In this document: in pieces, positions 6,529-10,200 of the stretch
How the letters are laid out: every line of letters starts with the position of its first letter
Numbering within the stretch: the first letter of the stretch is position 1
From: Iphione sp. A-MEVVRFRX5
Taxonomy: Eukaryota
Direction: 5' to 3'
Assembly: GCA_976226885.1 (NCBI GenBank)
Contig: OZ320313.1
Span: 65,596,001-65,660,000 of the forward strand
Length of the DNA stretch: 64,000 nucleotides
Program-made: the position numbers and the translations under genes
The notes under the pieces: generated by a model
Seen by the model: the letters and a program-made list of their open reading frames with translations, nothing else
Databases searched by the model: none
Told to the model about the DNA's origin: nothing

Positions 6529-6646
6529 GAGTAGATGCCGCTGTAGCTGTTTGTGTGGAGGGAGAAGATTTGGTGTCGCGATATGTTCCATTAATAATGG
6601 CAAGTTCCATGAGTTGTCTTTTCTTAAGGTCATCCTCCCCTTCGGG
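6529..6646 (-). CDS. QKI: QKI exon 5b (QUA2 domain, alternative copy B, KKRQ type)
   Basis: CTTTTCAG| [39 protein letters not shown]+C |GTAAG. 118 nt, phase 0-1. Confidence 0.93.
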
Positions 6647-6728
6647 CTGAAAAGGCACAAGAAAACATGGGACGGAGTTAGCATATTGTTAACGGTGTCA
6701 GTAGGAGAGGCGGTAAAAGAAAACTTAC

Positions 6729-6831
6729 GAGCTGTTGTGCTCGCGCACCCGATTTTCGTGTCTCGGTATGTTCCATTGATGATGGCAAGTTCCATCAGCT
6801 GCATTTTCTTCAGATCGTCCTCTCCCTCAGG
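6729..6831 (-). CDS. QKI: QKI exon 5a (QUA2 domain, alternative copy A, KKMQ type)
   Basis: TTTGCAG| [34 protein letters not shown]+C |GTAAG. 103 nt, phase 0-1. Confidence 0.93.
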
Positions 6832-7282: not shown

Positions 7283-10200
7283 GCTGGAAAGGCAATACAG
7301 ACTTGTGCCGTTTCCTGTCCGACTGGTGATTGGCATTTGTGATGGGCACCGTCTACCGTTACTGTTGATGGTTGAATCGCTAGCGTTCTTACGGGCGACG
7401 TTCCTGTGCAGTGTTTAGTAGAGCATGCAATTGTTAAATGTCTTTTCTGTACGAAATATCTAAACAATGAACTGTGGCGCTCATTCTAAGCAGGTAACTT
7501 AGCTAACAACCCAAAGGACGCGGCGTGCGTGTCAATTATACACTTACAACTGAGGCCTTTTTTTTAACCTCGAGTTTTTGTAACCTAGTAATAAAACGGG
7601 GGACGACCAACTTGGACGGTGTGGTGGCACATATTGACGACATTAGCTGGGCCAGGTCACGGACGGTGCAAAGCCTGAGTGCTGGACGGCCACCACCACG
7701 GAGCGTGACGACGTCATGACGTAGGCCACACCAGTGGACGCGTTATCTACGCTCGGCCGCGCACCGCTCTGGCTGTACCGTCATAATGAAGACAGCACAC
7801 CGCCCTCTTTATAAGGTCTGCGTACTTAAAGCCAACCGCCCACAACTGATCACATTACTTCAACAAAGTGCAATGGATCTGTCATTGTCAACCGCCTCGT
7901 CCTCCTGCAGGGTACGGGTGCCAAGTGCCAAGTACATAATGTACACCAACTCTCAGGAAAACTGGCTGTTGGGGTCGGGATCGGGCCCGAACCTGCATCC
8001 GCGGCCAAGTCCGTTCGGGGAGCACCAAAGGGGCACTAGGGTTTTCTCATGCTTACCTTGATCCGCCAATATTGACGTACTACGTAAGGATACAGGTGGA
8101 GTGGGAGGGCGAGCGGTGGAGAGGAGGGGCAGGGCGTTTGCCGACGGGTGCGCTGGAATGCGACCAACAGCCGGCTACCCGCCGATCGAGCTCGGCAAAC
8201 ACCTTCAGTCAACAGGGGCCGAGCATCGGTGGCGTCACCTGCGACTCATCCACCGCATTCTCCCCGCTCCGTAAACGGAGAGACACGGCCCAGTGAGCAC
8301 GACCCCAGACCTCCTCCTCCTAGTCCTACTCCTCCATCGGGCGAAGCAGGCGGCGCGGGGCCCAACCACAACGTCCCGCCGCCCCACCTGGCCACAGGCC
8401 CCAGTCTCATGCAGGTCACAGCCACATACTACAACCTGTGGGAAATCGCAATCTCTCGCACCGCATCGCAACGCACTATTTAGTATGCATTAAGGCACTG
8501 CCGGTCCCAGTGGTTGGTGTCTTCTGATGTTAACCACACTAATGAACACACCCACAGATCATTTAATAATTCACTCTAGCACTGAAAGGGTGGGGTGAGG
8601 GCGTCCTACTGTGGGAATGAATATCAGCCTTCCAAGAGGCGCCACCTATGTCGGATTGATCTCATCCTTCTTTCCTACTAGATTTCTAGTTATGATCAGA
8701 TTCTTCTTCAAAGGACACACATTCTCGCGGACTTATTGGATTCAGCCCGTTTCCTCTAGTGCGGTGGGCGGGCAGGTGGGTGGAGGTTGAGGGTGCGGCG
8801 ACCCGGGGTCTGTCAAGAATGCGGATTCGGGCTGCTGGGACATAGCGTGAGCGTCTGTTCCTAGTCCTACTGCAGTCACCGCCTCATATTATCCCAACAC
8901 TGAAGTAATGCTAACCACCCCTTTGGCCCCGGTGGAGAGGCAGAGGGGCGGGGTTGCGGGGTGCGCATACAGAGCACTGGTCGCCGTGTGGAAGGAGGAC
9001 TGCTGCTTCAAAAGGGGGTGGTGGACTCCCTACTACCTGGCGTGCAGTGATAGGCGCTGCTTCCTGAGCCATGTCCAGGTTAACTACCACCTTCGGCAGG
9101 GAGCGGCCAGGGGCGCCAAGTGATGCTCTGATTCCCGGGTAAACTATCTTACGCTTTTCCCGTTTTCACCGTCTCTTCGATCATAATTTTTGTAACTACC
9201 TAACGCCACACGGCCTGCATCTTCCGCCGCCAATTGGACAGATTTCGTGACCAAAAACAGTCACGGGCCTATGTTCAACTGTTAAATTGATCACTTTTTT
9301 TTATTAATGTGTCGCTGTATTGCAGTGGGCGCCCCGACCCGACCCGATCACTTCAATGAAATTCGCTCATAAGCCGCAGAGTCGGTTCACTTAAACATGC
9401 CCTACTGCGCAGGTGGCAGTACTACAGACAGGGCGCCGCCTGGCGGTCACGGTGGAAGATCCACGGTCAGAGACCTGCGCGCTCATGTCGTCGTCATGTC
9501 GCCATGTGACGGTACGTTGTATGCACTCGCGAGGAGGGCGGGGGACGGGGATGTGGGGGGGTGTGGGGGGTGGGGGGCACGGGGGCACTCCGTCCTGGTG
9601 ACATTACGAGCGTGAACAATGACAACTAATGGCAGCCTGTCAAGACGGTGGCGGCGGTGGCGTCCGCGGCCTACGCGTTGCTCTGCGTCCTGAGTGTTAG
9701 CGACCTGCTGGTAGACGTTTTGTTAGCAGCGCTCCAAGCCATTCCGGCCTGACCGGCGACCTGTTGAGTCGTGTCGCGGCCAATATGGTGCAGGAGAAGA
9801 GATCACCCTGGCGGGAGGGTGAGTCTTAGGTCTCTCTAACTCGGCGCCGGGAAGGGGGGGGGGGCAATACTGCCTGCTGGCGCGTAATAACAATCGCACG
9901 CCCTCGGCTACACCGCCCCAGCCAAGCCGATCCGACTTGATCCGCGTGGTTTTAATCCCCCACCGGTTATAGACGTACATGGTATGTAGCACAATAACCG
10001 CCCTCTGATTTGACAGGGGTTGGGGGGGGGGGGGTGAGATCTCGGCGCCATGACAGCATATCTCTAAATGGACCGCCGATCTAAACAAACGGGAGCTTAA
10101 CAAACGGGATACGTTCCTATGAGAGCACCTTAAACCTGGGATCGAGGGAAGTTCAGCAGTCGATGTTGAGGTTCTTCGGTAATGGCCATTGGGCATTTTC

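Follow-up and report, generated by a model that had tools for sequence, protein, structure and literature searches.

In muscle, glia and the germ line, the QKI/HOW proteins act as major regulators of splicing, translation and mRNA stability. The 64,000-nt stretch of DNA analysed here (the window) holds a gene of this type in which two neighbouring exons encode the QUA2 helix of the STAR domain, one with the Met of vertebrate QKI and the other with the Arg of fly HOW. The first-pass annotation had proposed that this lineage keeps both an ancestral Arg exon and a derived Met exon, that vertebrates retained the Met copy only, and that the isoforms could differ in RNA affinity or modification. The locus raises the question of whether both exons are used, how old the pair is, and what the match to QKI and HOW means. 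The following reading is, taken as a whole, the one we consider likely. The QUA2 helix and the linker after it would be encoded by two mutually exclusive exons, one of which is required to keep the frame; the pair would have arisen before the divergence of annelids and molluscs and kept its order since. Its products would be two STAR-domain isoforms that are predicted to differ at one residue facing away from the RNA and in a modifiable linker. The vertebrate Met/fly Arg match would be a real pattern for which repeated change at a labile site is a simpler account than a retained Met exon.

A tblastn search with full-length relatives recovered a complete QKI/HOW-type gene on the minus strand, numbered here as window exons 1–7 (all coordinates below are on that strand). 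Exon 1 (35962-35837, boundary good to about 1–2 nt) carries the start codon and the QUA1 dimerisation region, and its match to Pfam STAR_dimer (E 6.6e-16, 58 bits against a cut-off of 26.3) identifies QUA1. Exon 2 (29235-29104) completes QUA1 and supplies the linker that leads into KH, and exon 3 (22056-21940) encodes the KH core (...MRDKKK), with a single maxi-KH domain bearing the GPRG loop (KH-I_KHDC4-BBP E 9e-13, KH_1 E 2e-6). The C-terminal part of the KH domain (...LLVPA) is supplied by exon 4 (14297-14154), which ends in phase 0 and is 85-90% identical to QKI orthologues. Within intron 4, window positions 8001-10000 are GC-rich (GC 0.58 against about 0.44 around). As judged by this comparison, the window gene is the QKI/HOW orthologue of a lophotrochozoan, and it shares the QUA1-KH-QUA2 architecture of vertebrate QKI (4JVH).

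The 3' part of the gene offers two C-termini. Exon 6 (3787-3542) encodes a Pro-rich C-terminal region with the motif YPYEYPY; reading through its donor (3541-3522) gives the alternative C-terminus GTSYVR and then a stop, the counterpart of which is the GTSYMR that ends the related transcript P0285. Exon 7 (about 1483-1413) encodes the QKI-5-like tail AVRKVNRHAVGMREHPYTRVSLA, a candidate nuclear localisation signal. Its peptide shares 87% identity with the P0280 tail, P0280 being a related transcript, and matches Pfam Quaking_NLS with E 0.011 and 15.7 bits, under the curated cut-off of 22.9. The read-through GTSYVR and the spliced exon 7 ending REHPYTRVSLA form a pair of alternative C-termini as in vertebrate QKI isoforms, where an NLS tail is among the set. 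In the papers found, what is described of alternative splicing in vertebrate QKI affects the C-terminus (QKI-5/6/7; PMC9786888) and not QUA2.

Between exons 4 and 6 lie the sole two QUA2 copies of the window gene. The first, Met-type exon 5a (6831-6729, 103 nt) starts in phase 0, encodes 34 residues comprising the QUA2 helix and a short linker, and has one extra base at its end; the second, Arg-type exon 5b (6646-6529, 118 nt) has the same phases and encodes 39 residues, the helix being followed by a Ser/Thr-rich linker. Each has a polypyrimidine tract with a CAG acceptor and a GTAAGT donor, and the intron between them (6728-6647) measures 82 nt. The single QUA2 difference noted in the first-pass annotation is confirmed and both codons were located, the ATG of 5a at 6804-6802 and the AGA of 5b at 6619-6617. 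The contrast in linkers is equally borne out, with IGCASTTA in 5a and a Ser/Thr-rich linker containing an SSP site in 5b.

The reading frame dictates how the two exons can be used. Both are 3n+1 in length, and exon 6 opens with AG, so that the split codon C|AG (Gln) is completed whichever of them precedes. With both spliced in, the protein reads ...TTAPRRGG and ends at a stop five codons into 5b; with both skipped it reads ...LLVPASRA and stops three codons into exon 6. Since inclusion of both or neither breaks the frame, exactly one of 5a and 5b must be used. Adjacent, homologous, phase-matched, equipped with canonical splice sites and 82 nt apart, 5a and 5b are by their structure a mutually exclusive exon pair, and their use in the window animal is predicted from that in relatives. 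The arrangement resembles classical mutually exclusive exons such as those of the muscle myosin heavy chain clusters (PMC3912159), where a one-of-two choice between tandem homologous exons of equal phase is imposed by a short intron and by incompatible frames. In contrast to classical pairs, the swap here concerns part of the RNA-binding surface of a splicing/translation regulator, and the intron carries the regulator's own core motif.

Comparison of 5a with 5b over their 26 shared codons found 13 synonymous differences and one amino-acid change (pS 0.80, pN 0.03, pN/pS about 0.04), with synonymous sites near saturation. From 13 synonymous changes against a single amino-acid change, it follows that both exons are old and under selection. 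Chance likeness was set aside, as 25 of the 26 codons specify the same residue despite the 13 synonymous differences. The QUA2 helices of human QKI (4JVH) and GLD-1 align with both exons, 5a matching that of QKI with E 5e-9, and the QKI contact residues K190, Q193, L197 and A198 are all kept in both. The Met of 5a equals QKI M192, as the first-pass annotation had it: the chain offset of 4JVH was checked against K190/Q193 and G185/D187, the former pair being RNA-contacting residues of QKI and the latter also numbered in the same source (PMC5626755).

The same pair recurs in other lophotrochozoans. Relatives were found by HMMER search of cluster representatives and by word searches; exon boundaries in them are approximate unless fixed by isoform proteins. 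In the annelid Dimorphilus (L001) the annotated Met exon is followed about 230 nt downstream by an unannotated Arg exon, in the scallop Ylistrum (L003) a Met exon and an Arg exon lie 112 nt apart, and in the abalone Haliotis (L008) a Lys exon and an Arg exon lie 66 nt apart. The order of the exons in these three animals, non-Arg first and Arg second, and the linker types match those in the window. The annotation of Dimorphilus gyrociliatus (CAD5111200.1) uses the Met exon only, and the intact Arg-type exon extends from L001:5119 to about 5236.

Mollusc RefSeq isoforms come in two kinds, one with the Met/Lys exon and ILNGT and the other with the Arg exon, IINGT and the Ser/Thr-rich linker, and the exon swap is the sole difference within isoform pairs of the scallops Ylistrum and Argopecten and of Gigantopelta and Littorina. 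More broadly, QKI-like genes of Ylistrum, Argopecten, Mya, Littorina, Gigantopelta and Octopus have the same ordered pair, one exon being used at a time. Their first exons have further differences from the second exons, at the first two residues and in ILNGT as opposed to IINGT; gastropod first exons have Lys or Arg instead of Met, and the spacer between the exons is even shorter in some species. The combination of Met with IINGT seen in 5a is shared by Dimorphilus and absent from molluscs; in keeping with this, the window DNA is probably that of an annelid. Both exon types are also expressed among three related Logan/JGI transcripts that are about 90% identical to one another, the Met exon in P0285 and P0287 and the Arg exon in P0290.

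Across this sample, annelids, bivalves and cephalopods have Met in the first exon and most gastropods have Lys, the linker being short and Ser/Thr-poor, and the second exon carries Arg throughout, with a linker rich in Ser, Thr and Pro. In the 14 residues after RD the mean Ser/Thr fraction is 0.48 for second exons versus 0.15 for first exons, the sequences compared not being phylogenetically independent. Dimorphilus and three mollusc classes share this ordered pair together with its linker types. Its presence in annelids and molluscs places the duplication before the annelid-mollusc split.

Our full-text literature search turned up no account of alternative QUA2 exons in QKI/HOW genes; the exon-swap isoforms are already implicit in RefSeq models, and the pair as such is new to the literature searched. 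For annelids and molluscs it adds a second layer of diversity to these regulators, a splice-selected swap of the QUA2 helix and linker within the STAR domain.

Several mollusc models take in both the Met/Lys and the Arg exon, one after the other (P0281, P0289, P0293, P0310, P0371 and P0382, from pearl oyster, Pacific oyster, Saccostrea (RefSeq X6), Mytilus coruscus, Biomphalaria pfeifferi and Nucella). The exons lie only about 3-13 codons apart in the oyster and Nucella models, and in those of Mytilus and Biomphalaria pfeifferi the first exon runs straight into the second helix. Either the annotation is at fault in these models or they represent retained-spacer isoforms with a double QUA2 helix.

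We then compared the residue at the M192 position across the family. The Arg assigned to HOW was present in 177 of 177 tallied proteins, a set drawn from our first two word searches, of which the P0100 query gave almost only arthropod HOW. The set is mostly arthropod HOW and includes several Diptera, D. melanogaster itself not being named among them. Arthropod HOW is an orthologous STAR protein whose QUA2 helix core is identical to that of 5b; it has a single QUA2 exon in beetle and no Met-type isoform among the roughly 177 sampled proteins. Vertebrate QKI has Met192 as in 5a, but Leu200 where 5a has Ile, and the fish locus has one QUA2 exon.

Elsewhere the position varies. GLD-1 has Lys there, as do the tunicate and nematode sequences; C. 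elegans GLD-1/ASD-2 belong to the same subfamily (LKRKQ at this position), their solved KH-QUA2-RNA structure defines the helix residues that touch RNA, and no alternative QUA2 exon was seen in them. Among echinoderms, Lys occurs with LLNGT in a sea cucumber, and Arg is found in sea stars and feather stars. First exons of the mollusc classes have Met, Lys or Arg, and every sampled second exon has Arg. SF1/BBP (PDB 1K1G) lacks QUA1 and belongs to another subfamily, and it serves here as an outgroup for polarity only; its homologous QUA2 helix LRKMQLRELARLNGT has Met and Leu at the two variable positions. The M192-equivalent site is thus, in the sequences compared, labile and homoplastic. Given this lability and the Met and Leu of SF1, the proposed polarity of an ancestral Arg and a derived Met is unproven, with Lys occurring in gastropod first exons and in the sea cucumber, and Met in SF1.

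How deep the pair goes was approached with a maximum-likelihood tree of the 26-residue helix. The tree groups 5a with vertebrates and the first (Met/Lys) exons, and 5b with arthropods, echinoderms and the second (Arg) exons; vertebrates nest within the Met-type exons, beside the scallop first exon, with support 95/82. Removal of the Met/Arg and Ile/Leu columns leaves 5a identical to 5b and to other second exons; the grouping is therefore thin, resting as it does on two homoplastic columns. Approximately unbiased (AU) tests rejected no alternative topology: p was 0.447 for a clade of 5a with 5b, 0.13 for all lophotrochozoan exons as one clade (a Lophotrochozoa-only duplication) and 0.24 for a clade of first exons with vertebrates, all values lying between 0.13 and 0.5 in an alignment whose 26 residues hold too little signal.

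This tree speaks for a Met/Arg pair of bilaterian age, in which vertebrate QKI would descend from the Met exon and arthropod HOW from the Arg exon by reciprocal loss, an account we regard as unlikely. It would draw further on the Met, the Leu200 (the Leu of ILNGT) and the Glu at position 2 of AEGED that vertebrate QKI shares with bivalve/mollusc first exons. The features also travel as suites, Lys/LLNGT/Ala-rich in the sea cucumber and Arg/IINGT/Ser/Thr-rich in sea stars. If it were true, the QKI-versus-HOW difference at M192 would be a frozen splice-isoform difference, and the ancestor would have switched between a Met/Leu-type and an Arg/Ile-type QUA2 module.

Gene structure outside Lophotrochozoa speaks against so great an age. 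No second QUA2 exon or remnant was found at the four informative loci compared there, those of Asterias, Anneissia, Scleropages and Tribolium, each with one QUA2 exon. With sea star, feather star, fish and beetle all single-exon, a bilaterian pair would have to have been lost independently at least four times, where convergence asks for two substitutions. The Lophotrochozoa-only duplication survives the AU test (p 0.13), and the grouping of vertebrates with first exons depends on the two homoplastic columns, states that SF1 shares and that may therefore be ancestral or recurrent. Nor is the Ala-rich linker motif tied to the Met type, as it occurs beside Arg-type QUA2 in decapod HOW. Of the proposal that a two-exon lineage lies behind both QKI and HOW, the part that holds is that the pair is not young, being present in annelids and molluscs; its bilaterian age and the retention of the Met copy by vertebrates are unsupported by the single-exon loci and the AU tests. 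We accordingly keep to a pair that predates the divergence of annelids and molluscs, with repeated change as the simpler account of the vertebrate Met.

A few observations at these loci and in these proteins are recorded here in their own right. In the scorpion Centruroides (L005:79016-81856) one complete Arg-type QUA2 exon is accompanied by two partial copies flanked by gaps (15.5 kb of N), and the partial copies are most likely an assembly artefact; with these gaps the locus is uninformative on the number of QUA2 exons. The brittle star model P0154 (Amphiura filiformis quaking-B-like, 'LOW QUALITY' in RefSeq) has the whole KH region twice in tandem over a span of 184 kb, probably through mis-assembly or mis-modelling. 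Among echinoderms, QUA2 of sea cucumber (P0416, P0357) is first-exon-like, with Lys, LLNGT and an Ala-rich linker, and that of sea stars (P0353-P0355) is second-exon-like, with Arg, IINGT or MMNGT and a Ser/Thr-rich linker. Decapod HOW (for example P0360, P0363 and P0377) has an optional NAVAFFASAQ after its Arg-type QUA2, which resembles the optional ALAFSLAA(TAQ) segment of vertebrate QKI. Across these sequences the Ala-rich linker motif may be an ancestral feature that is not tied to the Met/Arg state.

Two further alternatives concern the window gene itself. One of the two exons could be a decaying or unused pseudo-exon, so that a single isoform is made, as the Met-only annotation in Dimorphilus might be taken to indicate. 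This is very improbable, for splice sites and open frame are intact and pN/pS is about 0.04 in both 5a and 5b, and both exon types occur in transcripts or RefSeq isoforms of relatives. A recent duplication in the lineage of the window species with a convergent Met, for which it can be said that the two 26-residue helices differ at Met/Arg only and that the 5a+5b clade survives the AU test (p 0.447), is hardly credible against synonymous sites near saturation (pS 0.80) and an ordered pair with the same linker types in Dimorphilus and three mollusc classes. The clustering of 5a with 5b that would mark such a duplication was not seen, the maximum-likelihood tree separating the two and the same pair being present in Dimorphilus, scallop and abalone.

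To consider what the swap may do, we turned to published structures. The RNA contacts listed for QUA2 of QKI are K190, Q193, L194, L197, A198, T203 and Y204 (PMC6847458), and the M192 position is absent from them as well as from the contacts described for GLD-1. The GLD-1 structure paper names Arg314 (QKI K191) as the sole RNA-binding residue not conserved among GLD-1, QK1 and HOW; with Arg314 the only variable contact, the next residue (K315 in GLD-1, M192 in QKI, Arg in HOW) was evidently not counted as one. On these grounds a direct RNA contact by the Met/Arg residue was rejected as the leading idea. The suggestion that the isoforms differ in RNA affinity is likewise weakened, the M192 position being excluded from the published contacts. 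Helical geometry would put residue 192 about 200 degrees round the helix from K190 and facing away from the RNA. Charge could act directly on RNA affinity, but that is not the leading expectation.

Met/Arg is the only helix difference kept between 5a and 5b despite saturated synonymous divergence. Every second exon and every sampled arthropod sequence has Arg, while the first exon tolerates Met, Lys or Arg. The retention of this one difference, together with the invariance of Arg in second exons, suggests that residue 192 or the linker attached to it is the selected difference between 5a and 5b. Phosphorylation or O-glycosylation could plausibly occur in the second-exon linker, rich as it is in Ser, Thr and Pro. 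The MAPK sites of HOW were considered as a precedent for the SP site of 5b and rejected: T59 and T64 are N-terminal and lie near QUA1, not in the post-QUA2 linker. The exon pair constitutes a natural experiment on the role of the M192 position and of the post-QUA2 linker, and a tractable case for asking whether ancestral alternative exons became fixed as differences between orthologues in other phyla.

An NCUAAC motif is present in the intervening intron in four of four species examined, as GCUAAC in the window, ACUAAC in Dimorphilus and scallop, and UCUAAC in abalone. The window GCUAAC (6682-6677) sits 36 nt before the 5b acceptor. NCUAAC is the branch-point consensus and the QKI core binding motif alike. 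Going by the motif and its position, exon choice might be self-regulated, with the protein competing against SF1 for the branch point of the Arg exon.
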